A stretch of 64,000 bases of DNA, from the NCBI GenBank assembly GCA_038087875.1, contig JAXLNO010005841.1:1302001-1366000 (forward strand). The letters are read 5' to 3'. Both the position numbers and the translations under genes were made by a program. The notes under the pieces were generated by a model that had not been told where the DNA came from, made no database searches, and was given only the letters and a program-made list of their open reading frames with translations. The DNA is from Malacoraja senta (lineage: Eukaryota). Positions within the stretch are counted from its first letter, which is position 1. Every line of letters starts with the position of its first letter. Positions 16,744-47,000 of the stretch are shown one piece after another.

Positions 16744-16890
16744 GTGAGGCTCCGGGTGGTTCACGGACTGATTACCGTAGCGACGTTTGTTAAATTCTCC
16801 ACCGTCACCAGTGTCCTGCGCGTATTTAGCGATTGTTGAGCCTTCCGTTGGTTCCAAGTCACCCTGTTGTCCAATTGTGTTTTGTTGAAG

Positions 16891-19412: not shown

Positions 19413-19714
19413 CGCCGCACCATCGGCAGCGCCTGTCTATTAGCTACCCCTGTTTAACGCTGTGAGACGCTCACTGGGTCTGCGGCCGCTTTGTGCAATG
19501 TAGCCTGTAGCAACTTACGCTTCTGGCAACAACCCGAATATGTCATTATCTCAGAGATGAGCTCGATGATTGTCCGCCTTGCACGCCGCGAAATTCTCTA
19601 TTCCCTATTTGTCCCTTGTGCCCCCTGTCCAACTCCCGCTGCGTGTATAATGGGGGTAGATACCCCTACAGACTGCGACCGTGCTGTGATTGGATCTAGT
19701 GTAACACAGTTCTC

Positions 19715-19720
19715 AATAAA
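19715..19720 (+). terminator. Polyadenylation signal of the IgL gene
   Basis: AATAAA about 300 nt after the C-exon stop codon. Confidence 0.6.
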
Positions 19721-20311
19721 GAACAAAAAACGCGATGTGTCTCCAGTGGTTTGTTTTTACTCGGGTCCTCACAATACATTGAGGGCATTGGCGCGCATAA
19801 TGGGGGGGGGGGGGGTCAGTAGCAGCCTTACATTTTACTTTTATGCATCTACGTTACTTTTTTGCATCGTTCATTCATTTGTTCTATATCTGTATATCAC
19901 CGTCTATATCTCTCGTTTCCACTTCTCCCGACTCAGTTTGAATCGGGGTCTCGACCCGAAATGTCACCTAAGCCTTTTCTCCAGAGATGTTGTCTGACGC
20001 GCATAGTTACTCCAGCCTTTTGTGTCTGTTTTACTCAAACGGCCCATTCCGTCCCCATGATCAATACCGATATATTGTCCCACACGGACCTCGTCTCTAA
20101 CCCCTTGCCATTAACCGGTCTCTCAATTCTGCGTTGCGTCTACCCTTCCTCCATAGCAACCCAACAAGTTTATCCTGTTCCCCCCCTTTCCATCCATTTC
20201 TATCCTTCCACCCCTACTTGTCGGAGCCAGATCCACAATCTCGGCGCTCTTTGCTCAAATTCGAACTTCCAGATCGGAAGTATACTTTTCAAGTCAACTT
20301 TCTGCTATTCC

Positions 20312-21447
20312 CTATTATGGATTACATTCAAATAATGTTTTTAGATACTTACAACTTAAAGATTATGTTAAATCACATACACAAGAATACAGAACTAGAG
20401 AACCAGAGATTCTAGATGAATGTTTGAATAAACACCCTAATACGGTTAAATTAATATCTTACATTTATAATACTCTTTTCGACAGTGATATTCTGTCGAC
20501 GGAATTATATAGAGTAGCATGGGAAAAGGAATTAGCCCAACCCATAACAAAATATAGTTGGGATGAAAGTCTACAACATATACATCAATGCTCATTAAAT
20601 ACCAGACATTCTTTAATACAATTTAAAGTACTACATAGACTACATTATTCTAAAACAAAATTAGAAATGTTGATTAAATTAGAAATTAGAAGATTAAATA
20701 GAATCTTTCCTAATATCTTTCCTGTCTGTGATAAAGCCAATACTCGGCGGCTAATTTAACCCATACTTTTGTAAATTGTATAAAATTAAAAATTACTGGA
20801 TGGATATTTTTAAAATAATTTCTGAAGTTGTTAATACTCAACTGGATCCCGATCCTAAATTAATAATGTTGGGCATATCAGAATAATACCTAAAACTTAC
20901 AACAAACCAAAGAAATTTCCTTGTATAATAATTGGGAAAAAAATAATATTAAACTTTTGAAAAAATCCTGCAACCCCCACAATTAAGATGTGGATTATGG
21001 AGATGTCGGAGACCTTACATTTGGAAAAAATTAGATATGTCTTAATTGACAAACCAGAATTATTTACTAAAATATGGTCTCCATTTATAGATTATTTGAA
21101 GGGGTAGACTGGGCCGGCGCGGAGGCCTGACTGAAACCTGAACCCAGGACTAGATGAATAGTTATGTTTTCTGACCTACGGACCTATCTCCTAAGTTGTA
21201 TTATTGGTAGTTTATCTTATTTTTCTAATTTCTTCTCTTTATTTCTATATTTTTCTTATCTATAAACATAAATAATTAATTAGAGGTAATTTTAATATGT
21301 TACCGATAAAGGAGGACTCCAGCTACTTTGGTAACTGGGTCCCCGGAACCCTGGATACTTAATATGTAATCGTTAAACAAAGTTTGTATTGTTTTGGACT
21401 ATGATACGCAGATACCTCTAATAAAAATTTAAATTTAAAAAAAAACG
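20312..21447 (+). mobile_element. 5'-truncated L1-clade LINE (ORF2 3' end, 3'UTR, poly-A)
   Basis: IQFKVLHRLHYS zf-RVT-like motif, AATAAA and an A-tail; flanked by the 12-bp TSD TTCTGCTATTCC (20300-20311 and 21448-21459). Confidence 0.9.
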
Positions 21448-24400: not shown

Positions 24401-26538
24401 TATGGTAGGAGTTTTCTGAGTTCTTACCAGCTTTGGGACAATTGAATAGAGAGGTGTAGTACCTCGTGCTAGTGAAGGTAAGAACAGGAAGATAGGTGAA
24501 ATAAATGTGTGGCAGAGGAGTTGGTGCAGGGGGCAGAGATTTAAGTATCGGGACCATTGTGATCTCTTCTGGAGCAAGGGTGACCTGTGCAAAAGGGACG
24601 GGTGGCACCATACCTGGGCGGGTACTAACATCCAGGCGGGCAGGTATGCTAATGCTACAAGGGACGGGCTAAACTAGATTGCCAGGGGGTGTGGTTTCAT
24701 ATAGGACAGAGAAAGGTGAGGTTAGAAGTTGGTATGGAGGGTGGTGAGAGAAAGGTTAGTGGACAGAATAGGCAAGTGAAAGGCGTAGAGCGAGAAAGGA
24801 TGGTTGGATCAAGCTGCGCGTATTTTAATGCAAGGGGCCTGACGGGGAAGGTAGATTAGCTTGGGCCATGCATAGATACGACAGACTGAGACGTTGTAGC
24901 CATTATTGAAACCTGATTATGGGGGGGGCTAGGACTGGCAGCTCAATGTTCCTGGATACAAGAGCTTCGGGAGAGACAGGGGTGAGGGTAAACTAGGAGG
25001 GGGGTTGCATTGTTGGTAAAAGAGGATGTCACGGCAGTAGTTAGAGAAGACATTGCGGACGGTTCATTTAGTGAGGGTACATGGGTGGAGCTATGGAACA
25101 AGAAATAGATGATCACCTTGTTCGGGGGTGTACTACAGATCCCCGAATAATCAACCGGAATTAGAAGAGCAAAAACAGGAACATTTTGAATTTGGGGATA
25201 AACCACACAAACTTTTGGCCCGACAACTGAAAAAACGGGAAAAAGATCATCCGATTTTAAAGATTAAATCAGACAAAGGGAAATTGTTAACACTACCTAA
25301 GGATATTAATAAAAGATTCGCTAAATTTTATCAACATTTATACACATCTAAAGCGTTAGCAGATAGTACCAACGTTATAGAGTTTCTGGATAATTGTAAT
25401 CCCCCAAAACTCAATTTGATCGAACAAGAGGAATTAGGTGCACAAATCTCAACTAAGGAAATAGAAGAAACAATAAATACATTAAAGAATGGAAAAACAC
25501 CAGGACCAGATGGTTTTAGTAATGAATTTTATAAAAGATTCTACGAGATAATTACACCACGGCTACATAAAATGTATACATATGCTTTTAAAGAACATAC
25601 ACTTCCAGAAGCACTAGCGGAATCAACGATTACACTTATACCTAAAAAAGGTAAAGATTTAGAAGACCTGGGTTCTTATAGAGCTATTGCGCTGTTAAAT
25701 ACAGATCAAAAAATATTAGCTAAAACATTAGCTAGAAGATTAAGTAATTATGTTAGTAAATTAATAAATCCGGATCAAACGGGGTTTATACCCAAGAGAT
25801 ACTCATGCAATAATCTGAGACGTCTGTTTAATATAATGCATTCATATAAAACCGAAGAACAAGACTTATCAAATATTTCACTGGACGCAGAAAAAGCATT
25901 CGATCAAGTGGAATGGGATTACCTTGTCAAAGTATTGCAAAAAATTCAAATAGGAGAGAATTTTATCGCTTGGGTAAAATTATTATATGATAGGCCTACT
26001 GCCAGAATATTAACTCATAATATTTTGTCCCGGAAATTTCAATTATCAAGGGGAAATAGACAGGGATGTTCACTATCACCTCTGCTATTTGCTCTTCTAA
26101 TAGAAGCGTTAGCAGAAAGTAAGTGAATACATCCGAACATCCATGGTTATAATACAAAATATTCAAATAATAAAATATCATTATACGCAGATGATGTACT
26201 ACTATATATCACAAAATCACAAATCAGTATACCAAATATATTAAATTTAATAGAGGAATTTTGATCCTTTTCAGGATGTAGAATAAATTGGAATAAAGGC
26301 GAAATTATGACGATAAAACCGCAAGACCCAACACACCTGTTAAAATTCCCTTTTAAAATCGCTTCAGAAAAATGTAAATATTTGGGAATTGAAATTACTA
26401 GAAAATATAAATCTTTATTTAATGCAAACTATATGCCCTTACTCAATAAACTAAACATACTGATTACATTCTGGAAAACTCTCCCGATGTCTCTTATAGG
26501 CCGAATAAATGCTATAAAAATTATCTTTTTACCACAAA

Positions 26539-27387
26539 GTTGGCGGCGCGACTCACGTTGCAGCGGCCTCTGCAGTCCGTCTGTCTTTTTTTTCCTTTTT
26601 TTTTGTTTCGTTTGAGTTTTGTACAGTGTGTTTTTTTTAACTGGGTGTGTGTGTGGGGGGGGGGGGCGGGGGGCGGGGAAACTTTTAAAATATTTTCCCT
26701 GCACGAGAGACCCGACCTTTCTCTCTCGGGTCTCCGTTGTCGTTGGGGCCTAGCACCGTGGAGCGGCCTCCAACCTGAACGACCTGGGGCTCCAGTCGCG
26801 GAGCCTGCGGACTATCACCATCGTGGAGCTGACCGAGTTCGGAGCGGGAGGAGCTATGGTGGCGCGGTGCTGCTACCCGACCCCGGAGATTCGGAGGCTT
26901 CAGCCGCAGGTCTGGTGGATGGTAACTTCGGGAGCTCGCGGGTCCATGGTGGGAGATCGCTTTTCGGGGTTCGCGCAACGGCGGCTACTCCCGCCCGAGT
27001 TGCGGGGTTGAGGATGACCTGGAGCGGGGTCTGGCATCGCCCGGCACGGCATTGGTGGCCGTGGGACTTGCTGGCGCTACCGGGGGCTACAACATCAAGA
27101 TCCGGAGCGTGGCCTTGCATCGCCCTGTGCGACTTTAATGGCCGCGGGACATATCTACAATCGCCCGCCGGGGGCTTTGACTTTGACTTTGAGAATGTGG
27201 AGTGCAGGGGAGAGATAAGACTTTGCCTTCCATCACAGTGAGGAGGAGATTCACTGTGATTGATGTTTGTGCAAATTGTGTTGTGTCTTGGTTCTTTTTA
27301 TTTGTTTGTATGACTGCAGAAACAGAATTTCGTTTGAACTTAGGTTCAAATGACAACAAATAAATATCTATCTATCTATCTATCTAT
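26539..27387 (+). mobile_element. Non-coding GC-rich retroposon-like insert, copy A
   Basis: Interrupts the L1 frame FLPQ|MLYLFQSIP; ends in AATAAA and (TATC)n; possible CAAA TSD. Confidence 0.85.
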
Positions 27388-28651
27388 CAAATGTTATATC
27401 TATTCCAGTCAATACCGATATACTTACCAATTTTTTGTTTTTAACTGGATGCTGATATTACAAATTTTATATGGGACTATAAATCCCACAGAATCCAAAG
27501 AAGACATCTGTGCAAACCTAAAGAATTTGGCGGATTATCGCTCCCTAATTTTATAAATTATTACTGGGCCACAAATGTCAAAAATATGATTCACCTGTTG
27601 GACAATTCGGCCCAGCAGGTGGATCGGATAGTAATGGAGAGAGAGGATTGTTCCCATTTTAATATAGGAGCGATCCTTCTCTCACCAACAAAAATGAAGA
27701 ATACAATATACAGTAAAAATCCAATTATTCATAGTACAATTAGAATTTGGAAACAAATAAAATTAACTTTAAAATTAAGAAATCAATCACTTCTCTCACC
27801 TATAATGAACAACCCTTCGTTTAAACCTTCTATGATAGATAAATCGTTTATAAATTGGGAAAGTAGGAATTAAAACGTTTGGAGATATGTATGATAATGG
27901 AAGTTTTTTTTAACATTTCACCAACTACAACTTAAATACAACTTGAGTAGTAATCAATATTTTAAATATTTTCAAATATGTGAGTATTTGAAAAAATATA
28001 CACGAGAATATCAAAATATGTCTCCAGACCTATTAGACGAGATAATGAATATAAAAGCGGAATCAACTAATTTAATAACATACCTGTATAATACCATTTT
28101 AAACATAGACATTCCATCACCTGATAGGATTAGAAGAGATTGGGAACAAGAACTAGCTATAAAAATCGCGAAAGAGAGTTTGGATAAACACCTGTTATAT
28201 GTGCATAAATGCTCGATTAACGTAAGACATAATCTAATTCAATTTAAAATTGTACATAGATTATACTATTCAAAAGCTAAATTAAGTAAATGTTACCCAA
28301 ATGTCTCTTCTATCTGTGATAAATGTCTAACCCAAGAAGCAACTATAACACATTATTTCGTTTTTTGTATAAAAATCCAAACATTTTGGAATGAAATCTT
28401 TGAAATTTTCACGAAATTATTTAAAATAAAACTGAAACCGAATGCAGAACTGATCATTTTTGGAACAATCGAAGCCAGTTTGGAGCTGACTTCGTTTCCA
28501 AGGAGCTTTCTTAATTATGGCTTAAAAACGGCAAAAAAACATATTGAAATTTTGAAAAAACGCTTCCACGCCAACGACAAAAATGTGGATTTCTAATATG
28601 TCGGAAATGTTACACCTAGAAGATATGAGATTCCTCTTAGCAGGTAAACCA

Positions 28652-31600
28652 AATCAAATCAAATCAAATCAAATCAACCTTTATTGTCATCTTGCAAGCA
28701 ACAGTTGTACAGTGCAAAATGAAAAGACGTTTCCTAGGGAATACCGGAGCATCGCACATGAAATTTAAAACATTTCACACATAATAACACTAAAAACAAT
28801 CCAGTCCCTGATGGAACAGTATAAATAGTTAAAAGTAGGTAAAAAAACGTTAAAATACAGTAAAACCAATCATAAACATATCCGGGGTGGCTGATTTGAG
28901 TGGCCAGTGCCAGTTATTGAAGTGGCCGGTGCCAGTTATTAAAGTGTCCGTGCCAAGCCACAGAATCAGAGTGGCTCTTTAGCATCCTCACAGCATATGG
29001 CAGGAAGCTGTTTAGCAGTCTTGTAGTCCGGGCTTTGATGCTGCGATATCTCTTGCCTGATGGCAGGAGATCCAGGTGTATGTGGAGGGGGTGCAGTTTG
29101 TCCTTAGCAATTTTCTGAGCTTTTTACCGACAGCGGCTCTGGAACAGTTCTTGTACCGAGGGTAGGGAGACGCCAATGATCTTCTCTGCTCCCCTCACTA
29201 CCCTCTGCAGAGCCTTCCTGTCCGAGCAGTTGCAGGTGGAGTACAGGCTCTGTCTCACGGTGTTGCGGTCATCGGCGGTGAAGCGCGGCTTCGCCTGTAG
29301 AGGGGACCGCACGGCAACGGCGAGAGCGCCGAGCCTATGCCACGGGAGCGCCGCACGGGTGCTGCGCGGGGGCCGAGTGATTTAAGTACGGCTGGTCCCA
29401 CGAGCTTGCGGTAAGTGAAAAAAAAGGGCGGGCCGACTGCGATGACGTCATTTTGGATCTGCGGGGCTGTGGCGGCGGCCGTCCTGATCGCGGCGCTGTA
29501 GCGGTGGCTGTGGCGGCGGCCGTGCCACACACGTGACTCACTAGCGGCGGCTGTGCTGATCGCGGCGCTGTAGCGGTGGCTGTAGCGGCGGCCGTGCCGC
29601 ACACGTGCCTCACTGGCGGAGGCTGTGGCGGTGCAAGTTCGACGCACGGCGCTCGTGCCACACGGGCGGCGGCTGTGGCGGCGGCCGTGCTGCACTCGTG
29701 CCTCATTGGCGGCGGCTGTGCGGTAGGGACATATTTTTGAACATTGTTGGTTTTATTTTAGCACCGTGCAGTGTTGGGAACAACGCCGCACGGCCCCGGA
29801 ATTGTGCGTTTGACCGAGTGCGCGGTCTATGGCGGCCCAGGAGCGGTAGATGCTTCCTGTTTCGCCGCCAATGACCGCAGACTCGTGAGACAGGCCTTTA
29901 CCACGTATTTATGCAGTACGTGAGTACAGACTCCACCGTACCCCTGTAGAAAGTCCTGAGGATGTTGGTGGGGAGTGAGGCCTGTTATAGTTTCCTCAGG
30001 ATGTGCAGTCGCTGATGGGCCCGTTTGACGGTCCCAGTGGTGTTCCTGGACCAGGTGAGGCTGTCTGTAATTTGCACCCCGAGGTACTTTATGCTCTCCA
30101 CTCTCTCCACTGTGGCGCCACTGATGTTAAGGGGTGCATGCTTTGGCTGCGCCCTCCTGAAGTCGACAACCATCTCCTTTGTTTTGTCGACATTTGATTC
30201 TAGATTATTTTTGCCGCACCAGTCCACTAGTTGTTTTACTTCCTCCCTGTACATTGATTCATCATCTCCGCTGATGAGTCCCACCACTGTTGTGCCATCC
30301 GCGAATTTTATGATCTTATTGTCCCTGAATCTGGCAGCACAGTCATGTGTGAGCAATGTGAACAACAGCGGGCTGAGCACACAGCCTTGAGGGGAGCCGG
30401 TGCTCAGCGTGATCGGGCCTGAAGTGTTCTTGCCCACACGGACTGACTGCGGTCTCTCTGTCAGAAAGTCCAAGATCCAGTGACACAGGGTGGTGTTGGC
30501 CCAGCAGGGTTAGTTTCTCCACAAGTCTCTGTGGGATGATGGTGTTGAACGCTGAACTGAAGTCAATGTACAGGATTCTGGCGTATGTGTTTCTGTTTTC
30601 CAGATGCGTGAGCACTGTGTGCAGCGTGGTAGAGATGGCATCCTCTGTAGAACGGTTGGGGCGATAGGCAAACTGGATGGGGTGTAACGATGAGGGGAGG
30701 CTGGCAGTAATGTGGGGTTTCACCAGGCGTTCAAAACACTTCACTATTATTGGGGTCAGGGCGACAGGGCGGTAGTCATTTAGGTAGGCAACAACTGGTT
30801 TCTTCGCTATGGGGATTATTGTAGACGTTTTGAGGCATGTGGGGACAATGACTGAGGGAGATGTTATAGATGTCTGTTAGCACATATGCTAACACCTCGG
30901 CACATTCTTTAAGCACACGTCCTGGGATGTTATCGGGTCCGACTGCTTTCCACGGGTTGACCTTAGACAGGATTCTGCGTGTGTCCATCGGGTCTATGGT
31001 CAGGACTGGCTGGTCGGTTTGTAAGCAGGGGCTGGCTCTCCCCTTGGGTGTGGTGTTTGCTGCATCAAAACGAGCGAAGAAGTTGTTCAGTTCATCTGGG
31101 AGAGAAGAATCCGTGTCAGTTACGTGCTGCCTTGCCTTGTACCCCGTCAGTGTTTGGATTCCCTTCCACATCCTCCTGGTGTCTCCTGTGTCACAGAGGT
31201 GTCCCTGGATTTTCCCCGCGTAGGCACGTTTCGCTGCCCTGATTCCTTTTTCCAGTGCAGTCCTGGTAGGTCGAAGAGCGGCTGTGTTACCGGCTCTGTA
31301 GGCTGCATCATGAGCCCTCAGCAGCGAGCGCACCTCTGCTGTCATCCATAGCTTTTCGTTTCCACGTGCAGTGAAGGTTTTCATGATGGTGACATCCTCG
31401 GTGCACTTGGCAATGTAGCTGGTTACAGTCTCTGCGTACTCCTCGATGTTGATGAGGTCATCATAGGATGCCGCTGTCCTGAACACATCCCAGTCAGTGT
31501 GCAGGAAGCAATCCTGCAGTGCTGAGGCTGCTCCCTCTGGCCAGAGCCTGGTGTGTTTTCTCTCCGCTCTAGCTTGTTTCTGCAGAGGTCTGTAGGCTGG

Positions 31601-31678
31601 TGTTAAAAACACTGAAATGTGGTCCGAGTGGCCCAGGTGAGGGCGTGGGGCTGCCTTGAAAGCCTCCGGGGTGTTGGT
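28652..31678 (-). mobile_element. Rex1/Babar-clade LINE, 5'-truncated
   Basis: [33 protein letters not shown]; (GATTT)n tail; 8-bp GTAAACCA duplication (28644-28651 and 31679-31686). Confidence 0.9.
29245..29898. mobile_element. PIF/Harbinger-like MITE (654 bp)
   Basis: Imperfect TIRs of about 30 bp, AGGCTCTGTCTCACG.. / ..CGTGAGACAGGCCTT; 3-bp TAC TSD (29242-29244 and 29899-29901); removing it restores the Rex1 sequence. Confidence 0.8.
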
Positions 31679-34600
31679 GTAAACCAGACCAATTCCAAAA
31701 GATTTGGTCTCCATTTATCGACTTATTACAAATATAGGGTGCAACAAAATGTTGATAATAAACGGTTTCAGGATCTGGCGAGGGGTGAGTAAAGATATGA
31801 AGTAGGTACATCCCTTTTATATTGTCCTATCTTATCTTACTTTTTCTTTTTTCTTTTTCATGCTTTTGGTTTTTCCCTTTTTTTTAAAACTATCTCTTGT
31901 GGTTTAGGTCCATATGGGTGTTCCTGGACCACTCTTTCAATCACTCACTTACTATCTTTACTAACTCTTTCTATCCTTTCTTTTATTAAAGTTTAAAATA
32001 AGAAGTGGTACAAGAAAAGTATAACCTTATGTTTATTGGAGATCACTGTACTGTACAATACTTCTAATAAAAAAATAATAATTTACAAAAAAAGGAATTA
32101 GAAGAACAAATATGCCAGGAGATTGCAGACAGCTGTAGGTCAAATAAGGTTGTTGTAGTCGTTTTTTTAAAAACTTTACCAACATTGACTGGGTAACATC
32201 ACAAAGGGAAGGGGTTGGATGGGGTGAAATTTCTCAAAAGCGTTCAGGATGATTTCTGAAGCAGTATGTCGAGCCCCCCCACACATGAGAGAGTAAAACT
32301 GGATCTAGTATTGGGAAAATGGGAAGGGCAAGTTAATGAGTTGAGTTTGGAGGAGCCTTTTGGGACCAGTGACCACAGTTCGATTAGGTTTAAGATATTT
32401 ATGGATAGGGATGGAAAGGGCCCACGTGCTAAAATGCTCAACTTGAGTACGGCCAAATTAGAGGGTATGAGAGAAGGTCTCGATCAAGTTGCCTGGAGCA
32501 GGTTATTTGAGGGGAAACGAAATATCGGCCAAGTGGGATGTTTTTAAAAATGCGCTGACAAAATGTCTGGATGTGTACGCAGGGAAACGTAAGGTAGCTT
32601 TGCTGACGAGGATGATTGAGGTATTGGTCAAAAACAAGAAGGATAAATAGGACAGGTATAGGCAGCTGGGATCAAGTGCAACACAGGAGGAGTTTCGGGA
32701 ACAAAGGAGGTGCCATTAAGGACAATCACAAAAGATTTTATAAATACATAAGGGGGTAAAGGGTAACTAATGAGAAAGGGAGTGGGACCTCTCAGGATTC
32801 AAAGCGGTCACCTCTGTGTTGAGCCACAGGGGAAGGTCAAGGTCCTCAAAGAGTATTTCTTCTCTGTGTTTAACGAGGAAATTAAAGACTGTAAAACGGA
32901 GGAACTTGGGGCAGTCAATGGAAGTGTCTTGAGAGCAGTCATTGTTACCGTCGAAAAAGTACTGAAGGTACTTCATGTAAGAATGTAGATAAATCTCCTT
33001 GGCCTAAGCAGATATCCCCGTGGACATTGTGGTACACTGGAGGCGAAATTGCGGGAGCCCTTGTTGAAAATTATGTCGTCCTTAAATATAGGAGAGGTGC
33101 CGGAAGACTGGAGGGTGGCAAATGTTGTGCCTCTATTCAAGAAGGGCTGCAGGTAAAATGTTGGGAACTATAGGCCGGTGAGCTTAATATCTGTAGTTGG
33201 AAAGTTACTGGAGAGTATTCAGAGGAATAGGTTGGTCAGGCATTTGGATGGGCAAGGGCTGATTATGGATAATCAGCATGGTTTTTTACGTGGGAGATCG
33301 TGATTCATAAATCTGATTTATTTCTTTGAAGACGTGACCAAAAGGTCGATGAGGGCAGAGCTGTTTTGTTGTATAGATGGATTTCAGTAAGGCGTTCGAC
33401 AATTTTCTGCATGGTTCCTGCTTTGGAACGTTAGATCGCATGGGATCCAAGGAGTGATGGCTGAATGGATAGCTACTTGGCTTCTTAGCAGGAAGGGGAG
33501 GCTGATGGTGCAAGGTTGCTTCTCAGACTGGAGGCCTGTGACTAGTGGTGTTCCTCAGGTTTCGGTGCTGGGCCCATTACTTTTTGTCTTCTATATCAAT
33601 GATTTGGATGAGAACATACAGGGCAAGATTAGCAAGTTTGCTCATGATACAAAAGTGGCTGGTTTTGCAGATAGTGAAGATGGTTGTGAAAGATTGTAGC
33701 AGGATCTTGATCGATTATCCAGGTGGGCTGAGGAATGGTTGATGGAATTTAATAGAGAGAAATGTGAGGTGTTGCACTTTGGGACGTCTAACAACGGCAG
33801 GACCGACACGATGAACGGCAGGTCTTTGGGGAGTGTTGTACAGCAGAGAAATCTAGGAGTATTTGTACATAGTTCCTCCAAAGTGGCATCTCAGGTAGAT
33901 ATGGTGATCAAAAAGGTGTCTGGCACATTGGCTTTCATCAGTCAGATCATTGAGTATAGACATTGGGAGATAATGTTGCAGTTGTATAAGACGTTGGTAA
34001 GGCCGGATTGAGAATATTGTGTAGTTTTGTATACCGTGTTAGAGGAATAATTTTGTCAAGTTGGAAAGGGTGCAGCGAAGATTTTCGAGGGTGTTTCCAG
34101 GTCTCGAGGGCCTCAGCTATTGGTAGATGTGTTGCATGGTAGGTCTCTGTGAAGTGGTATAGATCAGAGGGATCCAGGAGTGCAAGTGCATGGTTCCTTG
34201 AAGGTCTAGTCGCAGGTAGATATGGCAGTCAGAAATGCTTTTGACACATTAGCCAACTGCAATCAGTGCATTAAGTATAGAAGTTGGGAGGTCATGCTGC
34301 AGTTGTATAAGACGTTGGAGAGACCGCATTTAGAATATTGTGTTCAATCTGGGCACCAGGTTATAAGAAATATACTGTCAAGCTCGAAAGGGTTCGGAGA
34401 AGATTTAGGAGGATATTGCCAGGACTAGATGGTCTCTGCTATACAGAGAGGTTGAGTAGACTGTGTCCCTATTCCTTGGAGCGCATGAGGATGAGGGGTG
34501 ATCTTATTGAGGTGTATAAAATCATGAGAGGAATTAATTGGATAAATGCACAGATTCTCTTGCCCAATCGACGACGAGAGGACATAGGTTCAAGGTGAAG

Positions 34601-36026
34601 GGGAAAATATTCAATACGAATCTGAGGGGTATCGTTTTCACACAAAGGGTGCATGGAACAAGCTGCCAGGGGAGGTAGTTGATGCTTGGACTATCCGAAC
34701 GTTTAAGAAACAGCTAGAAAGGTACATGGATAGGACAAGTATGGAGGGATATGGATCAAGCACAGACAGGTGTGACTAGTGTAGCTGGGACAAGTTGTCC
34801 GGTGTGGGCAAGTTGGGCTGAATGGCCAGTTTCCACACTGTATCGCAGTTTGGCTCTGTGAATCTAGCAGATAAATAAATTTGAGTTTTAATTTACACGA
34901 GAACAGCTGGGCTTGGACTGAAATAATCGTCTTGTACCTGATCGATTCCCTGATGGAAGCAGGTTTAACCTTCAATACCCAGCAAACTAATGAGCCACAT
35001 ATGCCGAGAGGAGAGGGTAAGGGCGTGGTGGCAGCAGATGGGCGCCTGGCGCAGACATGGACAGCTGGAGTTATACTTACACACGGCCTGGCCCACATTG
35101 AGATTTGCAATGGTTTGATTTTTCTCATATTCTGAGACTTCAAAGACATGTTAATTACTGCAGCAACTGTTGACCAACAATCTCATCATGATTGTTGCAT
35201 GAAATGGAAAAAAAGTGGCCGAACTAGAGCTCTTGTGTGTTTCCTGTTTAAGCTGTTTGATCCTGTCCGTGAGACCTCGGTAAATGGGTTCACTTCAACG
35301 ACCAGGGTGGTTCAAATGAACGGCGAGCTGATGTATGGAAATTAAACTAATTTACAGAGTCCTCCGTTACGTCCTGTTTACTCGTTCATCGAGACCTTGT
35401 AGGATAGGCGCCAACGCCAGTACCTGATCGAGAGCAACAGCAACATACAACCCAATCCAACGCCCAGAGACATAGTCACCCGTGGAAGCTGTGGGAAGGT
35501 CTGCTTGACATGCTGAGTCAGCCATAGCAGACGATGCAACTGATAATATCAGCCATTTTGGGTGCTTGACAAAATGGAGGATTTCTGCTTCTGTAAAACC
35601 TGCTTTTATCTTTTGCAAAAGCTGTAAAGACCATGTCCATAGCTCCAGAGAGACTCTAGCCTGGGACGAGGTTGAATAAAGTTTGATGTCCAGATGGCCT
35701 TTAATTGTTAATATGCATGATGTTTTGCAGAAGGAGCTAGGTCCTGAAGCAAATGCATGCCTGGAATTGGTTGGGAAATGAAAGGTTACATTAATGTTGC
35801 GGTCTTTGTTGCATGGTATTCGCGCCGTTACTTGTAATTGGTCAAGAAGAGGGGACTTGCCCAAACTGTTTACTTTACCTGGTATAATGTTTCTTTACTG
35901 AGTAGAATTGTTTCCCACTAAGTGTTTTCTATCGAAACTATGTTATGTGATGTTTTGTGTTTGGGTTATGGAACTGTCATTTAATGTATTTTGTAATCCT
36001 TATTGATAATTGGCTTGTAGACCTAT

Positions 36027-36155
36027 GGAGGTAGTTGATGCTTGGACTATCCGAACGTTTAAGAAACAGGTATAAAGGTACATGGATAGGACAAGTATGG
36101 AGGGATATGGATCAAGCACAGACAGGTGTGACTAGTGTAGCTGGGACAAGTTGTC
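36027..36155 (+). repeat. 129-bp local direct duplication of 34671-34799
   Basis: 127/129 identical by direct comparison. Confidence 0.95.
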
Positions 36156-37297
36156 AGACATGAGCAAAGCACGATGCGCCAGACTGGACAAGGGCGCCAG
36201 AACCGGATTATCCATGTTACCCTGATGAACCACCTCATTAAGAATTAATTTCACCAAGACAACACTGGAAAGGGAATAGAGGATTGGGACCAGACCAATG
36301 TTATCCTTGCGGTGAACTAGGTCACTGGAGTAGGGAGTGCCCGACACGAAAACGACATGTATGAGGGGGCCAACAGAGATAACAGAGAGATCAGAGAGAG
36401 CAAAGAGGGAACTGGCAAATAAATCAGGGGCAGAGAAGACAAACACACTTCTCCCAAACGTATCCATTCTCACGATCCTGATTAGCGAGTCTGTCCAGAT
36501 TTAAGGGACAAGTTTGCCAGCACCCTATCTCTAAGCCAGTTGAAGTGGTGTATCGGAGCAAAGCAGTAAAACATACAGGCGTAGTAACCACTGAAAATTA
36601 TGCAAGAAAAGAGTCACTGGAAAAACACCGCAGAACTATTGAAAAATAGTAGCCACCGCCATGTTTCCCTGAAAGCACATTTTGAAGTGGGCAAAGTGGT
36701 AGAATTGGATGCTTGCTTTAATTGTGGTTAGCGAGGCCCTTCGCAGCAAGGAATACCCGTCACGGAGACAAAAAATTGACTATAACAAGAGCAAAGGGAA
36801 TGCTACAGAGGGGAGACACAATAACTGCTCTTAAGATGACTCGTTAAAAAATTGGAATGTGAACATTTTGGCACTGGTAACAGGACAAGAAGGAACAGCA
36901 GAGTGCGTTAAAATACCGCTAGACATATGGAAACGAGCTTCAGAGGTTGCTCAACACATCACGAGGAAGGTGAATTTTCCAGCAAGTGCGAAAGACTTGG
37001 GAGCAACGGTAAAGAAAGCAATTGATCTGGGAGATCCGAATATATATGAAGAACAAAACATGTCTAACCAATGTACTGTTAAGTTTAATCAGACCCCGAG
37101 GACAGTTGTTGCCCAGCTACGCCAGAATCTGGGGACTGAGGTATGTGAGTATGTGGACCCGAAAGTGTGGGCAGAAGTTGCAACTCAGGTAGGATGTTTT
37201 CGCATTGATCACATCCAGGTAGCTCTTCAGAAAGGGGTGACACTGTCATCGACACAGCAGTACCCATTGAAACAACAGGCAATTCCTAATATAGACA

Positions 37298-37399
37298 GGT
37301 AGACAAAAATGCTGGAGAAACACAGCGGGTGAGGCAACATCTATGGAGCGAAGGAAATAGGCAACGTTTCGGGCCGAAACCCTTCTTCAGACTATACTG
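37298..37399 (-). mobile_element. 102-bp Penelope terminal unit with hammerhead motif, inserted in ERV pol
   Basis: 12-bp TSD CTAATATAGACA (37286-37297 and 37400-37411). Confidence 0.88.
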
Positions 37400-38164
37400 C
37401 TAATATAGACAAGCTGATTCGGGGAATGCTGGAACAAGACATCTTAGTGAAATGCCAGCCCATTTACAACACACCAATCGTTGCGGTGCCCAATGCAGGG
37501 AAAGATGGCCAGTACAGACTGGTTCAGGACTTAAGATCTGTCAATGAAGTGGTAGAATCGCTCCATGCCTTGATACCAAATCCGACTCATATTTTAGTTT
37601 TGATTCCAGCTAAAGCGAAGGCTTTTTTTAAATTGTAGACCTGCAGCATACCTTATTCTCATTACCTCTCTACAGAAACAGACAGTATTTATTTGCCTTT
37701 ACTTACAGGGGACAACAATATACGTGGACAAGACTACGTCAGGGATTCATGAATTCGCCTACCTTGTTTTCTCGATGGCTTCAAGGACAGTTAAGCACCT
37801 TATGTTTTAAAAGGAAATCCACTTTAGTACAGTATGTGGACGACTTGTTAGTGACTAGTTTAAATGAGCAGAGCAACCGTGAGGATAGTGCTCAATTGTT
37901 GAACCTCTTGGCAACCTTAGGACATGTGGTCTCTCAGTCCAAAGTATTAATGGCTCAACAAAAATAAAAGTTTCTGAGAGTAATAATTTCGGCTACGGAG
38001 AGAAGTCTAGCAAGCAGTAGACTTGAACGAATTTGCGAATTTCCTGTACCAAAAGAGGTGAAGCAGATGATACAGTGGTTCGGTATGGTGAATTACTGCC
38101 GATCCTGGATCGCTAATATTGCACCGGTCACCAAGGAATTGACTCCTTATACTAGCCTAGAGGG

Positions 38165-39538
38165 CAGCGTTTCCACACCTCAAAAAAAATCCTGAAATAG
38201 AATCCCAAATTTCCTGGAATCTTATGGTATTTCGTGACATTTTCAAAAATGCTTCCTGCGTGCTATTTGTTGTTGTTTTTCTTTCGTGGGCACACGTTAA
38301 CAACACAAAGAAGAACAAGGCAAAACACATCTATGCAACTGCACCGTATCTGCCTGCTTCTGTTACTCACTTCTGCAGGGCATAACATATGATGTAGCCT
38401 AGCCTGCATGGTATGCATATTGTGAGTTCAGTGCAGTATGTGCCTGGAATTAAGTGTCACAAATAACTCAATACAACAATCAATCAATCGAATTATTTAT
38501 TTGCCACAAGCACCAATAAAGGTACAGTGAAATGTGAGTTAACATAAGCCTCTAATTAGCCTCAAACTAAACGACTGGGTTGTGATGGCTCCCTCCCTCT
38601 CCCCTATCGCTCTACCCTCTCCCACTCCCCAACTCTTTTCCCCTCCCCTCCCCCTCTCCACCTCCCTCCCCTTCTCTCATCCTCTCCCTCCCCCTCTCTC
38701 TCTCCCTCTCTCTCTCCACTCCATCCCCCTCTCTCTCTCCCCCTCTGCCCTCACCCCTATCTTTCCCCTCCCCCTCTCTATCCCTCCCCCTGCCCCTCTG
38801 TCACATCCCCCCCTTTCCCGCTCTCTCTCTCTCTCTCCCTCTCACCTCCATCTCCCCCCCACCTCTCCCTCCCTCGCAGCTTTGGAGGGCACGCGGCTGG
38901 GGAGGCGGGAGCCCGGCCGGAACGGCGCCTGGTGTCGAGTCACGGCCGCTGCCAGGACTGGGTTCAGAATCAGTCGTTCCCGCTCCCGCTCGGGGACGGG
39001 AGAACGGTCTCCCCCGACCGCCGACAGCGAACCCGCTCCCTGGACGCTAGGCTGACCGGCGGCGAGGCTCCGATGGCGCGGATGGAGGCGATAGACCGGG
39101 CGGGCAAACACCGCAGCCCCGGGCCCGGAGAAGCGGGCACTCCTTTTTTTTTTACAAATCAGCCGCGGGCCGGATTGCACTGCCCCTTCCCCAACGCAAT
39201 ATCCCACGGCCCCACTCACCTAGACTAGGCACGAGGCGTCGAGGCGATGTATGATTGCGTGTAGTGAAAACGGTGGTGATCTGATCGCGCCGGGGCCCAC
39301 TGCGCACGCGCAGGGAGACGACGTCATTTGGCGTCCCTACCGCGGCACCGGCCTCCCCCAACTGCGCAGATGGTCGCAAATATTTTCCCCCAAATCACCC
39401 CCCGGGCCGGATACGTAAATTTCCCGAAATTTCCCCAAATTATTAAAATTCCCGAAATTATTCAATTTCCCTAAAAATACCCGAAGACAACCAGAATTTC
39501 TCGAATTTCGGGTAATTTCCCTCAAAGTGGAAACACTG
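38165..39538. mobile_element. hAT-like non-autonomous DNA transposon (1374 bp)
   Basis: TIRs CAGCGTTTCCAC / GTGGAAACACTG; 8-bp TSD CTAGAG(G/A)G; subterminal AATTTCCC repeats; removing it rejoins the ERV pol frame. Confidence 0.88.
38590..38875 (+). repeat. CT-rich low-complexity tract inside the hAT element
   Basis: Near-pure polypyrimidine sequence. Confidence 0.9.
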
Positions 39539-41233
39539 CTAGAGAGCGAATTCCAGTTGACCAAAGAAGCTCAGAAAGTCTTCGAGAATTTAAAGGGATC
39601 TTTAATGCAGGCTCCAGCACTAGGTAGGCCACACTACGATAGACCCTTCCAACTTTACTGTACCAGCATCTGACAACGGCTCCTCAAAACAAATATTAAA
39701 TTTATCAATTGAATAATCCAAAACTCAATTCAGACACTGTACAATCTGGCATCTTTCCTCATTTCATCACAATGGGAACAGTGTGGAGGCTGCTGCCTTT
39801 GAGTCACCCTTTTCAGCACAACAGGCTGAGCTGTTCACTTTAATCAGAGCATGTATTGTTGGAAAAGATCTGAGGGTAAACATATATACAGATTCTAGAT
39901 ATGCATGCGGAGTAGTACATGACTTTGGGATAGCTGTGGAGGAATAGAGGATTCCAAACCTCGGCAGAAACTCAAATATCTCATAAGCAATTGGTGACTG
40001 GTCTACTGAAGGCTCTACTGCTAGCTAGACAAATTTCGGTAATGAAGTGTAGCGCTCACACTAAGGGACAGACCCCGATAGACAGAGGGAATCATTGTGC
40101 TGATCAGGCAGCAAAGGAAGTAACCCGGGAACGAAAGGTGCTGGTGACAAAAATGATGAGGCAGATAAAAAGTTCAGGTAACAAATCTCGCTCGGAATAG
40201 CCAATGCCAACCATCCAGGAAATTATTCAGTTGCAGAAAGAAGTTCCTGAAGGGATGTAAGATTGTGGAAACAGCTTGGATGTGCAATAGATTGGATGTG
40301 GGTTACTCCGGCAGGGCAGACTTGTAGGACAGATCTTCTTGCAGCTTGGGTTGTTCAGTGTATGCACTGTGGTACGAGAGCAATTGGTGATGCTCTTTCG
40401 GCTACTTGGTGGCATCCAAGATTACAAACTTTGGCCCAGAAAGTGAGTAGCTGCTGTATTATTTGTCAGAAATATAATCCTGGGAAAGGAGTGCGTTGTG
40501 AAGATGGAAGAACACCTTTGCCCATGGGTCCTTTTGAAACTCTTCAAATGGATTATATCGAGCAGGAGAAGTGCCAAGGAATTTGATTTGTACTTGTGAT
40601 TGTCGATATATTCAGCAGCTGGATCGAGGCCCATCCAACACTTGATAACAAAGCGGCTACTGTTGTCAATGTGCTTATGCGAGAACTTATCCCTAGATTC
40701 GGTATCTTAATTCGGCTTAGTTCTGACAATGGTCCTCATTTTATTGGGCAAATTAATAAAGTATTCTGTGAACAGCTGGGCATCCAACAGCAACTACTCT
40801 GTGCTTATCGACCACAGGCTGCTAGACTTGTCGAAAAGGTCAAATCAGACCCTGAAAACTAAATTAGCTAAATTGAAAGAGGAGACAGGAATTAGTTGGA
40901 TCAAATTGCTCCCTATAGCCAACCAAGTTTCTATCCATATCAGTACCCTATCCCCAATACCATGTGCTCTAATTTTGCTCAATAATCTCCTATGTGGGAC
41001 CGTATCGTAGGCTTTCCAGGTACACTACATCCACTGGCTCTCCCTTATTCATTTTCCTTGTTGCATCCTCAAAAAATTCCAGCAGATTAGTCACTCATGA
41101 TTCCCCCATCGTAAATCCATGCAGACTCGGACCGTTCCTGATACAGCGATCCAAATGTTACAGCACCTGTAGTTCCTTTTGTTTCCTATTGTTCCAGTCC
41201 TTTTTCGGTATTTATTTGCAAATAACATTAGAA

Positions 41234-41269
41234 GGGTCTGAAGAAGGGTCTCGAACCGAAACGTCGCCC
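41234..41269 (+). ncRNA. Minimal type I hammerhead ribozyme motif
   Basis: GGGT-CTGAAGA-A-GGGT(CTCG)AACC-GAAA-C-GTC-GCCC: intact core, 4-bp stem I, one mismatch in stem II. Confidence 0.6.
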
Positions 41270-42390
41270 ATTTCTTCTCTCTAGAGATGCCGCCTCACCC
41301 GCTGATTTACACCATCAATATGTGTTTACATTAGAATGAAACATATGTCCAATACACCACACAACGCTCCACGTCTCTTCAATTACTTCCGTTTTCCAGG
41401 CCCCCATTCCCTCATATTTACCACGGATGTCCAGTCTCTCTGCACGTCCATCCCCCACCATGAATATCTTAAATGTCTATTCCTCGGCCGCAGAACCAGC
41501 CAATTCTACTAATACTCTCCACCGCCTAGCAGAGCTGGTCATCACCCTGAACAACTTCTCCTTCGACTGCTCCCGCATCCTCCAAATCCACGTCGTAGCT
41601 ATGGGCACTCGTATGGGCCCCAGCTATGCCTGCCTCTTTGTAGAGTACGTCGAACAATCACTGTCCAAGGCGTACACTTGCTCTATCCCCGAACTCTACC
41701 TCCGCTACATTGACGACTGCATCGGTGCTCCCTCCAGCACCCATCAAGAACTCACTGATTTAATCAAGTTCACAACTAATTTAAATCCTGCACTCACATT
41801 GGAACATCTCCGACATCTCTCTACCGTTTCTGGATTTCACCGACTCCAAAACAGGAGACAGATTACTGACCGACATCTACTACAAACCCAGTGACTCCCA
41901 TAGCTATCCAGACTACACTTCTTCCCACCCTGCTTCCTGTAACGATTGTATCCCCTACTCCCAATTCTTCTGTCTAAACTGCATCTGCGCCCAGGATGAG
42001 GTTTTCAACACCAGATCATCGGAGATTTCCTCATTCTTGAGGAAACGGGGGGGTCACCTCTTCCATTATAGATGAGGCTCACACCAGGGTCTCCACGATA
42101 TCCCGCAGCTCCGCTATTGCTCCCCGTCCACCCATTCGAAACAAGGACTGAGACCCCTTGTCCTCACCTTCCACACCATCAACCGTCGCATACATCATAT
42201 AATCCTCCACCAACACGTTCACCACCTTCAACGGGATCCCACTACTGGCCACAGCTTCCCATCTCCACCACTTTTTGCTTTCCGCTGAGATCGTTCCCTC
42301 TGCAACTCGCTGATCAATGCGTCACTTCCCATCCAAACCAGCCCCTCCCCAGGTACTTTCGCCTGCAAGCGCAGGAGATGCAACACCTGG
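41234..42390 (+). mobile_element. Penelope-like element: pLTR with hammerhead motif and RT fragment
   Basis: AMGTRMGPSYACLF and LRYIDDC (YIDD 41706-41717) are typical PLE RT motifs. Confidence 0.88.
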
Positions 42391-42723
42391 CCCATGTGTC
42401 TGATCATTGAATGACTTAATATCGAGAGTCATACCACACTGAAACATGCCCTTCGGCCCAGTTCATCCAGTTCATCAAGACGCCCCATCTACGCTCGTGG
42501 CCTTATCCAGCATGTGGCCCAAACCCCTCTAAACGTTTGCTATATATGTGCCAACCCGTCTTTACAACGTTGTTCTGCTACCTACCTCGATTAATTCCTC
42601 TGGCAGCTCGTTTCATATACCAAACACCCTGTGTGAAAGTTAGGAGAGGGAGGTTGGGAGATACATTTTGAGAGGCATAGATCTGAGAGGCATACATTTT
42701 GAGAGGCATAGGCAGCCACCACC

Positions 42724-43400
42724 TGGGGCGCAGCACGATTGGCAGCCCCGCCAACATTCTGTCTGTTTTTTCGTCTTTTTTTTAGTTTCAGTGTGCTTTA
42801 AAATTTGTGTAAATGTTCTCCGGCTTGTTTTATGTGAGGGGAGGGGGAGGGGGGAGGGGGAAACTTTCTTCTTCTCTCTCTTACATTGCCGGAGATGCGA
42901 TTGTTTTCAGGATCGTATCTCCGGTCGTTCTCCGCCCTTAAATCGATGCAGCTGGAAGCCTCCTCGGACTCGGATCGAAGCCTGCGGAATTTACCATCGA
43001 GCTCGCAGTCTCGGAAGAGGCCGAGTCGGGAGGTCCATAGACGCAGAGGCTCAACCATTCCGGCACCGGGGTCCGATCGCCGACGCGGGGGAGCTGACAT
43101 CCCCTCGATGCAGGAGCTGATCGTCCCGATGCGGAGAGCCCAAAGGCCGCCGGCTACGGGGGGTCAAGATCGTCCCGTCAACGGAGGGCTCGAGGCCGCC
43201 AACCGAGGGAGAGCAAAGAAGGGAAGAGATTGAACTTTTTTCGCCTTCTGTCACAGTGAAGAATGTGGAGGAGTCACTGTGGTGGATGTTTATGTTAAAA
43301 TGTGTTTTGTGTTTTCCGTTGATTTTTATTTGTATGACAGACTTGCTAAATACAATTCCACGTATGTTGCAAAACATACTTGGCTAATAAAATGTTATTG
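42724..43400 (+). mobile_element. Non-coding GC-rich retroposon-like insert, copy B
   Basis: Same head, T-tract, G-tract, stem-loop and tail architecture as copy A. Confidence 0.75.
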
Positions 43401-44060
43401 AATGCAATTTCTTTATCTTTCATTCAAAAATACGTTTGAACGAAATTTCGTTTTACCATGCAGTCATAAGAATAAAAAAGCAACAAAACACACAATTTAA
43501 CCAAAACACCCATCACAGAGACTCTCCTCCAGGCACCTCCTCACTGTGATGGGAGGCAAAATGGTGTTATCTCTTCCTTGCTTCTTCTCCCGCGAGCAGG
43601 CAGTCTAACTGCTGCGTCGAGGCGACCGGGGCTCCCGATATTGTAGCCACCGCCGGGCGATGGACGATCCCGCGGCCGATTATAAACCGCACCAAGCGAT
43701 CAAAGGCACTGTGAACGGGCCAATTCAAGCCTCACCATTCGGGGCGGACGAAGCTGCTGTTGCGGGAGCTCCCGAAAATCGGTCGCCAACCAGGGCCCTG
43801 CAAGCTCCAGATGTCACAGTCCACAGGGCCCGCGGCCGAAGCCTCCGAAGCCTCCGAAGTCAAGTCGCAGCCGCAGCGCCACCACAGCATCCGAATGTCA
43901 GCCAGCTCCGCGATGGTAATTTCACAGTCTCTGCGACCGGAGGCCTCAAGGTCGATTCCAGTTGGAGGCCGCCAACTCCTCGATGTTAGGCCTCAGCGCG
44001 AACGCAGATACGACAGGGAAAAAGGTCACATCTGCGTTGAAGAAAGAGATTAAAAACAGT
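43401..44060 (-). mobile_element. Non-coding GC-rich retroposon-like insert, copy C (head truncated)
   Basis: Antisense tail and stem-loops homologous to copies A and B. Confidence 0.72.
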
Positions 44061-47000
44061 CTCAGATTACCAATATTGCGTTTAACTCCATGTGAGAACT
44101 ATTAGCTTCCACTCAGAGTGTGTGCAGTACAATTCCAGTTACAAGGCGCAGCAGGGGCGGCGCAGTGGCTTAGGCCCTGCACAGTGGTGTAGCGGTAGAG
44201 ATGCTGTCTTACAGCGACAGAGACACGAGTTTGATTCTGACTACGGATACTGTCTGTACGGAATATGTATTGTCTCCCCAGGGCCGCGTAGGTTTTCGCC
44301 GTGTGTTCCGATTTCCTCGTCAACTCCAAGACGCCCGGGTTTGTAGGTTATTTGGTTTTGGTAAACATTGTAAAGTGTTCCTAGTTTGTCGGATAGTGTT
44401 AATGCATCGGGGTGATTGATTATCGACCCAGATTCTGCGTGCCCATGTGGCTGTTTACGCGCTGTACTTCTCAAGTGCAAAGTCTAAAGTACCTGCTGAC
44501 GTGGTCAAAGTCTTGTTTGTTACTGTAGAATTGTTCTTTACCAAGGGTATGTCAGCTCACTGACAAGGCATGTACCAAGACTGTCTCGGGCCAGAACCGA
44601 CGTTCAGTACAAGGTAAGAACACGGAATATATTGGGGAACGGCACGGTATTAATAATACGGCAACGACCAACTCGGTGTTGCTCGAATTGCTTGAAAGTG
44701 TCGATAGGATTAATCGTCGATTTATAACTAAATAAGCGTTAAGAAATTATCGAGTCATAGAGCGTGAAAACAGCCATTCGGCCTAACTTTCCCATTTCGG
44801 CCAACATATTCCAGACACACTAGTTTCACCTGCCTGCGTTTGGCCCATATCCATCTAAGCCTGTCCTATACACGCATCTGTCCAATGTTTCTCAAACGTT
44901 GCGATAGTCCCAGCCTCAACTACCTCTTCTGGCAGATCGTTCCATACGCCAACCACCCCATTGTGTGGATTATCTGGAATGTTGCGACACCGATAATCCA
45001 TCTTTGATTTTCTCAAGAAGAGGGGGACGAGGGATGACCGCGGAGGGTGTATAAAATCGCAGATAAGGTAATTGGCACAGGATAAGGCTGTATTAAACTA
45101 AAGGGCACACGTTTGATGCGAGAGGGGACAGATATAAAGGCGATATTAAAGGTACGTTTACAACACAGAAGGCAATGTGTATGTGGAAGAGGCTATCAGA
45201 TGATTTGGCTGAGGTGGGTACAATAAGTGGTTAAAACGTTTGGACAGATACATGGACAGGAACATTGAGGAATATGAGGCAAACGCAGGAAATGGGTTTA
45301 GCACTGGATCGCTACCTGAGCTACCAGAAAATTGGCATTGGTTCAATAAGATTAGAGTTTAACGTCGGCTCAGAAATTGGTGTGAAAGAAATGGGGTTGA
45401 ATTCGTGGGGAAGAGATTGGTGTGGGAGATGTGGGATTAATATTAACATCAGTATTGGGGAAGGAAGGACAGACCTCGCCTGAAACCTACTGAGCCCAGG
45501 GAACTGACGAATAGCATACATCGGCTCTAAGTATGCTTTCAACTAAACAACGGAAAGTTGTGGTGGGGGGGGGGGGGCGGTGGGGGGTAAGAGACTACAA
45601 AGAATGGGCAATATTAAAGGGAAGCAGAGCGGAGGAAGGAGTACTGGAGTCTCAGGAATAAAATGTAAGGCGTAAGTTGAGAAAGGGATAAGAGTGTAAC
45701 GTTTGGCAACATCGGAACGGAGTCTAGAAGAGGGGTAAATAAAACAGTACAGAAGGTTTTATATTTGAATGTACGCCGTAGAAACACGGTGTTTGAGCTC
45801 ATATGTGGTCAGAAAATGGCAGAATTCCCATTGTGGGCATCACAGACTCACGGTTGAAAGAGAATCAGAGCAGCTGGCTTACCACGCAAGGACACAAATC
45901 CTATGAAAGGCAGTCAGATGGGCGAGCGAATGGGCGGCTCTGTTCGTGACTACTGTAGTCCAGTGCTCAATAACAAATCACATAAGTTCAGAAAAATATT
46001 GAATTCCTGAGAGGAGATTTGAGAAACTGCAAGGCTAATAAGACCCTGATTGGACATATGTGCAGGGCTCAGAATAGAGCTCATGGTGTATGGCATAAGG
46101 TGCATCATGTTGGATTTCAATATGCAGGCAGGCTCGGACATGACGCTGGTGCTGGAACCCACGAAAATTACTTTAAAGATGGCCTATGAAATTGCGCATT
46201 AGATCAACTCGTATTTCAGCCCACTAGTGAAATGGCAATTTTGAACCTAGTGTTATGTAATGAACCTGATGTAATTTGGGGCTAAAGGTAAAGAAACCAC
46301 ACGGAGGCTGTGGTCATAATATGAAATAATTCAACTATACTCTGACAGGGAATGGCTGAAATCGTATGTATCGGTATACGGTTAAGTAATGGCTTGGCGG
46401 AGAAATTTGCTAAATTTGATTGGTACGAGACTCGAGCTAAAATGACACGAGAGCAGCAATGAGGAGAGGAGATTCAGCGAGTAATTCGGAAGACGCAGGA
46501 TCTTTTCATCCCGAAGAAGAAAAACTGACCAAGTGGAGAACAAGGCAACCGGTGCTGACAAAGGATGCCAAAGGTAGCATAAAAGCAAAAGGAAAGGCAT
46601 ACAATATAGCAAAGTGTACCGATAGACTAGACGATGAACTACCGATATTGGTTGACGGAATATTGGCGTAGGCTATTTTCTAAATGTGGAATGGATTCAA
46701 CAATCGAGATGAAAAGGGATTTGAACGTTCCGGTGCAAAGATCCCAAAGGATGAATTTATAGGTTGGGTCGGTAGTACAGAAGGCAAATGCAATGTTAGC
46801 ATACATTTCGAGAGGACTGGAATATAAATCGAAGATGTACTGGCGAGGGTGTATAGGCCGTTATCAGAGCACATTTGGGAGATATGCTGGCGTTGACGAA
46901 TGTCCATGAAGTTTACGAGAATGATTGGGTTAACGTATGAGGAGTGTTGATAGCTCAGGCCCTTTACTCTGGAGTTTTGGTAGATTGAGGGACGATCTCA

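Follow-up and report, generated by a model that had tools for sequence, protein, structure and literature searches.

A long, non-coding retroposon family of skates with an internal RNA stem and LINE-type tails

A 64,000-nt stretch of DNA from Malacoraja senta (GenBank assembly GCA_038087875.1, contig JAXLNO010005841.1, positions 1,302,001 to 1,366,000 of the forward strand; hereafter the window) contains four related copies of a repeated element, which we call A, B, C and T. We think it likely that they belong to a high-copy, non-coding and non-autonomous family of non-LTR (non-long terminal repeat) retroposons of skates, which is probably transcribed by RNA polymerase II (Pol II) and mobilised by long interspersed nuclear elements (LINEs) of the L2/Rex1 group. 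The copies are homologous and built from the same modules, have no coding capacity, maintain pairing through compensated changes and occur in abundance; some are truncated, and for one of them the exact insertion site is visible. An earlier note on this DNA had described a non-coding, non-tRNA, structured retroposon mobilised by LINEs. This interpretation proved right in kind, and the parts of it that did not stand were the ribozyme and the covariation claimed for several stem-loops. No published description of the family was found in the literature.

Results

Searches with blastn and nhmmer retrieved exactly four related stretches in the window, and an nhmmer profile found no further copies there. 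The three copies and the tail fragment that had been claimed previously are true relatives at the places given for them (Table 1, in which the 3' end of B and both ends of C are approximate). Two copies are full length, namely A, with 850 nt, and B, with ~676 nt and a type-2 tail; C is 5'-truncated and has a type-1 tail, and T is a 5'-truncated fragment of a type-2 copy. Homology between A and C extends over nearly all of C (positions 148-836 of A), and the bodies of these two copies are 71-72% identical. B and T share 82% identity over 164 nt. The parts common to A and B are the head, the region of the long stem, the early body (positions 8-316 of A) and the 3' block; the central body of B is shorter and diverged. 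The greater length of A is in part due to an internal duplication in its body (27016-27067 and 27099-27150, spaced by 83 nt and 75% identical).

Read from 5' to 3', the element begins with a GC-rich head of ~45 nt, T-rich DNA with runs of eight or nine T (T8-T9) and a G run. These are followed by GAAACTTT and a pyrimidine tract, by the long stem, which we refer to as stem-loop 1 (SL1), by a GC- and CpG-rich body and by a purine-rich stretch. The 3' part consists of a block common to all four copies, which holds a second stem-loop (SL2), then a third (SL3), an AATAAA signal and a short tandem repeat. The observed/expected ratio of CpG in the bodies is 0.93-1.06, compared with 0.67 for the window.

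SL1 was found in A, B and C exactly where the earlier note had placed it, and its folding z-scores against shuffled sequences were -3.2, -5.4 and -3.5, respectively. An alignment of the three copies comprises 14 pairs with 92.7% of the cells paired; five of the 14 pairs have changed on both sides, including changes from C-G to U-A, C-G to G-U and G-C to C-G, and two have changed on one side. These values were reached by 8 of 500 shuffles, and pairing fell to 26-48% when the 3' arm was slid by 1-3 columns. As judged from the alignment, this signal of covariation appears to be about as strong as three sequences can give. SL1 of B and C is steadier in the sense RNA (-25.8 vs -16.6 kcal/mol for sense and antisense in B, -16.7 vs -14.4 kcal/mol in C) because of the G-U pairs that form there, in agreement with what had been claimed for this stem; SL1 of A has no G-U pairs and is symmetric (-19.1 vs -19.8 kcal/mol on the two strands). 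The motif GGCCTA(A/G)C, reported to lie 3' of the stem in A and C, is present in both and is missing from B. A covariance model of SL1 detected no further instances in the window. RNAalifold, applied to the two 5' halves, misaligned SL1 and returned only low-complexity pairing between T runs and G runs. Our comparisons support the view that one internal stem, SL1, has been preserved by compensating changes on the sense strand.

The other hairpins differ in what can be said of them. SL2 (ATCACAGTGA/TCACTGTGAT) forms in A, B and C, where this 3' hairpin had been described, and is broken in T; the covariation that had also been attributed to it is taken up in the Discussion. SL3, a third hairpin that the earlier note lacked, lies just upstream of AATAAA and has folding z-scores of -3.9 in A, -2.9 in B and -1.7 in C. 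Between A and C it shows two compensated pairs, U-A to C-G and G-C to A-U, and the type-1 SL3 hairpins favour the sense strand. In the heads, TGCAG/CTGCA of A and TTGGC/GCCAA of B form stems of 5 bp with 6-nt loops at matching places, a co-location that has a chance of ~0.009 by shuffling. The existence and co-location of these head hairpins, as claimed, were therefore borne out. Beyond that they are suggestive only, as heads are present in two copies and the hairpins are not preferred in folding (z -0.7 and +0.2).

The element does not encode a protein. The 233-codon open frame of A has no Pfam match and no relatives at E<=0.001 among 5.8 billion proteins, the gaps between the bodies of A and C are not multiples of 3, and codon periodicity is absent. 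On these grounds a coding gene was ruled out, in line with the previous statement that there is no real open reading frame (ORF). Equally, the lack of tRNA A/B boxes noted before was confirmed: ARAGORN found no tRNA in the element, and no A/B boxes are common to the copies. Both A and B have T8-T9 runs at positions 43-66, and shorter runs of T4-T6 occur as well. Transcription by RNA polymerase III (Pol III) is unlikely because the element lacks A/B boxes and its T8-T9 runs lie at a distance of 45-65 nt from the start. We took as the hallmarks of a strict Pol III short interspersed nuclear element (SINE) a tRNA, 7SL or 5S head with A/B boxes, no inner terminators of four or more T and a length of ~80-500 nt; with no such head, with inner T runs and with lengths of ~676 and 850 nt, the element was rejected as a SINE of this kind. 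An Rfam search, as proposed in the earlier note, matched no family, ribozymes included, either at gathering scores, applied to the entire window, or at E<=5, applied to both element regions. The sub-threshold noise consisted of microRNA-like hits on the G-run/pyrimidine hairpin and of IRES_Bip at 14.6 bits, compared with a cut-off of 40. A DNA transposon or miniature inverted-repeat transposable element (MITE) was discarded because the element has no terminal inverted repeats, and a processed pseudogene of a host gene was excluded by the high copy number, the element's own 3' module and the series of truncations.

The copies carry the marks of retroposition. A splits ORF2 of an L1/Tx1-like LINE, and its excision restores the reading frame (LPQ joined to MLYLFQSIP), leaving a target duplication of (C)AAA, 3-4 bp. 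C and T have kept the 3' end and lost the 5' end. The type-1 tail is found in A and C, with (TATC)6 seen in A, and the type-2 tail in B and T, with TATGAT repeats in T and ATGATT repeats behind the B-type tail in other copies, the latter being read from loose contig ends behind 43391/43399. One 3' block is thus combined with two tail types. The stem-loop and short tandem repeat at the 3' end are those of a LINE-dependent retroposon of the stringent type, and the lack of coding capacity, the 5'-truncated copies and the short target duplication are further features of LINE-dependent retroposons. The truncation of C, at 44054-44074, coincides with the 3' edge of the position of the G runs in A (26655-26682) and B (42838-42861), which fits stalling of a reverse transcriptase at a G-quadruplex, in this single case. 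B and C meet tail to tail at 43392-43412, and hardly any short-repeat tail separates them.

The abundance of the family was assessed with Logan contigs from four runs bearing four organism labels. Around 19,000-23,000 contigs per run were placed on a 2.1-kb stretch at a likeness of at least 80%; contig depth is not copy number, and it was used only to set a single-copy flank against many thousands of matching contigs. The flank next to C (44075-44145) is covered at the single-copy level. The 5' ends of B and C are confirmed by the limits of family-level matching, which sets in at 42724 and breaks off between 44054 and 44074. Some contigs that bear another organism label cross the 5' junction of C together with the single-copy flank, suggesting, without proving, that this insertion is older than the split of the labelled organisms. 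Exact-pattern scans of metagenome contigs for the conserved 3' hairpin returned 0 loci.

The LINEs of the window were inspected as possible partners. An L2-like LINE (28646-31714, minus strand) is 5'-truncated near 31.75 kb and has an RVT_1 match and a weak, sub-threshold match to ALKBH8_N. Its ORF at 30776-31714 (minus strand) is 93% identical to the Leucoraja erinacea protein LOC129694857, and the next best matches come from stingrays. The 3' end of this LINE (28646-28740, minus strand), the only L2-like one in the window, comprises a hairpin, ATGACAATAAAGG and (GATTT)6, and is laid out like the type-1 tail of the element, with ATGACAATAAAGGTT(GATTT)n at its terminus. The CR1 copies end in 8-nt repeats with the unit TTTCTATG (minus-strand reading) at 50824-50849, 58290-58317 and 62730-62772; given these endings, CR1 is an unlikely partner.

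Table 1. Positions of the copies and of their modules within the window
Feature	Position	Strand	Remarks
A, full-length copy in ORF2 of L1/Tx1-like LINE	26539-27388	+	LINE frame restored on removal
Head of A with TGCAG/CTGCA hairpin	26539-26585	+	Co-located with the hairpin of B; not the preferred fold
Runs of 8-9 T after head of A	26586-26606	+	
G run of A, G-quadruplex-like	26655-26682	+	Counterpart in B at 42838-42861
SL1 of A, 9-bp stem (extendable with a bulge), 10-nt pyrimidine loop	26707-26734	+	
GC-/CpG-rich non-coding body of A	26745-27205	+	Holds the internal duplication
SL2 of A, ATCACAGTGA/TCACTGTGAT	27232-27260	+	Within the 3' block common to the four copies
Type-1 tail of A	27330-27388	+	SL3 27330-27353, AATAAA 27359-27364, (TATC)6 27365-27388
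B, full-length copy	42724-43399	+	Many family contigs start matching at 42724
SL1 of B, 13-15-bp stem	42889-42924	+	
SL2 of B	43250-43283	+	
Type-2 tail of B	43358-43391	+	SL3 43358-43383, AATAAA 43386-43391; (ATGATT)n next in other copies
C, tail to tail with B, type-1 tail	43401-44066	-	5' truncation at 3' edge of the G-run position
SL1 of C, stem of 14 bp including two G-U pairs	44001-44038	-	
SL2 of C	43508-43553	-	
SL3 of C	43418-43445	-	Two compensated pairs relative to SL3 of A
T, 3' block and tail ending in TATGAT repeats	59362-59545	+	SL2 and SL3 decayed

Several other features of the window were recorded. The L1/Tx1-like LINE ORF2 that is split by A (RVT_1 and zf-RVT) extends over 25128-28596 on the plus strand. 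Within the L2-like LINE there is a GC-rich insert of ~640 nt (29250-29893) with 33-nt inverted terminal repeats (82% complementary) and 72-nt tandem repeats, which looks like a DNA transposon of the MITE type. Upstream of B, a reverse-transcriptase fragment with a weak RVT_1 match (41427-41894) is followed by 16-nt tandem repeats (42661-42710); this probably represents the 3' terminus of a different retroelement, into which, or next to which, B inserted. C is adjoined at 44150-44400 by a tRNA-related SINE of a common elasmobranch type, which is high-copy in the four runs. Farther away lie immunoglobulin light-chain V-set and C1-set exons (16833-19412), several CR1 copies, one of which includes a run of N at 9168-9424, and a tandem array in an open frame (63591-63789) with a 30-nt unit, 6.6 copies and higher-order periods of 60 and 90.

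Discussion

A life cycle that would account for these features can be proposed. A master copy would be transcribed by Pol II from its first base, and the transcript would end past the AATAAA signal, which sits ~25 nt from its 3' end. The 3' module, that is, the conserved block with SL2, SL3 and the short repeat, would then be bound in trans by the reverse transcriptase of a LINE of the L2/Rex1 group (CR1 group), much as in 'stringent' LINE/SINE pairs. Target-primed reverse transcription would begin on the short repeat and often halt early, giving rise to the 5'-truncated copies (C and T) and to tiny target duplications (A). That one 3' block is joined to (TATC)n in some copies and to (ATGATT)n in others would point to tail exchange or to two related partner LINEs. 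Selection acting on the sense RNA of master copies may preserve SL1, which lies 3' of the pyrimidine tract and the G run and is a candidate for a protein-binding site or a stabilising element within the 5' leader.

Some of our observations weigh against this proposal. We infer the transcription, its start site and the polymerase, and likewise the partner LINE and the role of SL1. The covariation of SL1 is that of three sequences, and its shuffle control ignores their relatedness. SL2 is conserved and not covarying, with one compensated outer pair, a value reached by 126 of 500 shuffles; of what had been claimed for this 3' hairpin, its presence in three copies stands and its covariation does not. 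To speak of covarying stem-loops in the plural, as the earlier note did, was an overstatement, given that SL2 is merely conserved and that the head hairpin comes from two copies. As for the partner, local alignment of the 3' untranslated region (UTR) of the L2-like LINE with the four tails gave scores no better than shuffles, and the shared 'ATGACAA.AAA' is, on this comparison, a similarity of layout and not homology. The 8-nt repeat tails of CR1 differ from both tail types of the family, and no LINE carrying the family's tails was seen in the window.

The strand on which pairing is maintained bears on two other explanations. One is that SL1 or the 5' 300 nt is a ribozyme capable of cleaving itself, or some other catalytic RNA, and acts in the processing of the element's transcript. 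The selection for pairing on the sense strand speaks for it, and there is precedent in ribozymes at the 5' ends of some non-LTR elements, namely hepatitis delta virus (HDV)-like ones in R2 and related elements and hammerheads in Penelope-like elements. We consider this extremely improbable: neither hammerhead, HDV-like, twister, pistol or hatchet ribozymes nor any other Rfam family matched at gathering scores in the window or at E<=5 in both element regions, and SL1 is a plain, single hairpin whose loop sequence and flanks vary, with no multi-helix core conserved between A and B. It is also very unlikely that the hairpins are kept as DNA rather than RNA, either as palindromes through templated repair or as protein-binding inverted repeats of an internal promoter. 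The equal stability of SL1 of A on both strands would agree with maintenance as DNA, as would SL2, a near-perfect palindrome that hardly varies. However, the G-U pairs of B and C turn into A-C mismatches on the opposite strand, and the preference of the type-1 tail hairpins is for the sense strand too.

A different question is whether the family derives from a LINE. It is possible, though in our opinion rather unlikely, that the element arose by internal deletion from an autonomous LINE of the L2/Rex1 group. The 5' UTR and promoter of the LINE, possibly an array of repeated subunits, would then be represented by the head, SL1 and the CpG-rich body, and its 3' UTR by the 3' block. In that case the structures would be of use to the LINE, and the element would merely have inherited them. 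Like the UTR-only deletion derivatives of LINEs, the element has no ORF, a LINE-type 3' end and a CpG-rich 5' part that may bear a promoter, and the 83-nt-spaced internal duplication of its body would agree with an array of this kind. A survey of the CR1 group describes, for elements that lack ORF1, repeating subunits of 100-500 bp that lie near the 5' UTR and are specific to the species, and it reports chondrichthyan L2s to be without ORF1 (PMC13343379), which keeps this origin alive. It speaks against such a derivative that the 3' block does not resemble the 3' UTR of the L2-like LINE in the window, where neither a matching parent nor a full-length LINE was seen. In addition, two tail types occur on one combination of body and 3' block, a finding more readily accounted for if the element is a parasite that exchanges its tails. 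Going further in the opposite direction, we would give somewhat less credit still to the idea that the family is a distinct lineage and not a LINE remnant, consisting of structured, Pol II-transcribed retroposons that need an RNA domain of their own (SL1, pyrimidine tract and G run). If this were true, such a domain could attract a protein of the host or of the LINE, or shield the 5' end, LINE partners would be switched by tail exchange, and there would be a SINE-like superfamily defined by an RNA hairpin instead of a Pol III head.

The LINE-mobilised retroposon that we favour resembles several known systems in part. UnaL2 and UnaSINE1 of the eel (L2 clade) are a LINE/SINE pair of the stringent type, and SINEs of the UnaSINE1 type are short, tRNA-derived and transcribed by Pol III. 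With UnaSINE1 the element has in common that it is non-autonomous, that it ends in a 3' stem-loop and a short tandem repeat, that it would be copied by a LINE enzyme with specificity for this 3' end and that 5'-truncated copies occur. In contrast to UnaSINE1, its copies measure 0.68-0.85 kb and lack a part related to tRNA; they have terminators for Pol III close to the 5' end and possess a CpG-rich body and an AATAAA signal. The SVA elements of hominids end in poly(A) and use L1 with relaxed recognition. Like SVA, the element is long, non-coding and GC-rich, is probably transcribed by Pol II and has a variable inner region, G-rich runs and a polyadenylation signal; unlike SVA, it has LINE-style hairpins with (TATC)n or (ATGATT)n and shows no composite of known SINE or LTR parts. 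An SVA-like composite was rejected on account of the tails, which are short non-A repeats, and of the target duplication of A, which at 3-4 bp is not of the long L1 type. Conserved-domain SINE superfamilies (CORE, V and Deu), exemplified by SacSINE1 in dogfish and skate (PMC2746220, PMC5499810), also combine a conserved internal block, comparable to the 3' block with SL2 and to SL1, with differing LINE-type tails. Their heads, unlike those of the copies studied here, are derived from tRNA or 5S.

The family is an unusual form of a familiar genomic parasite, and no new class of element or mechanism is indicated. If our interpretation is correct, a long and CpG-rich parasite of LINEs that does not stem from tRNA is present in skates in tens of thousands of copies, maintains an internal RNA hairpin through compensated mutations and employs two kinds of LINE tail. 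This would broaden the view of how non-autonomous retroposons are built past the Pol III SINEs. For annotation, such CpG-rich inserts may pass wrongly for CpG islands, non-coding RNA genes or ORFs. The family would also offer a natural system in which to learn which RNA features, beyond the 3' tail, are required by the parasites of LINEs.

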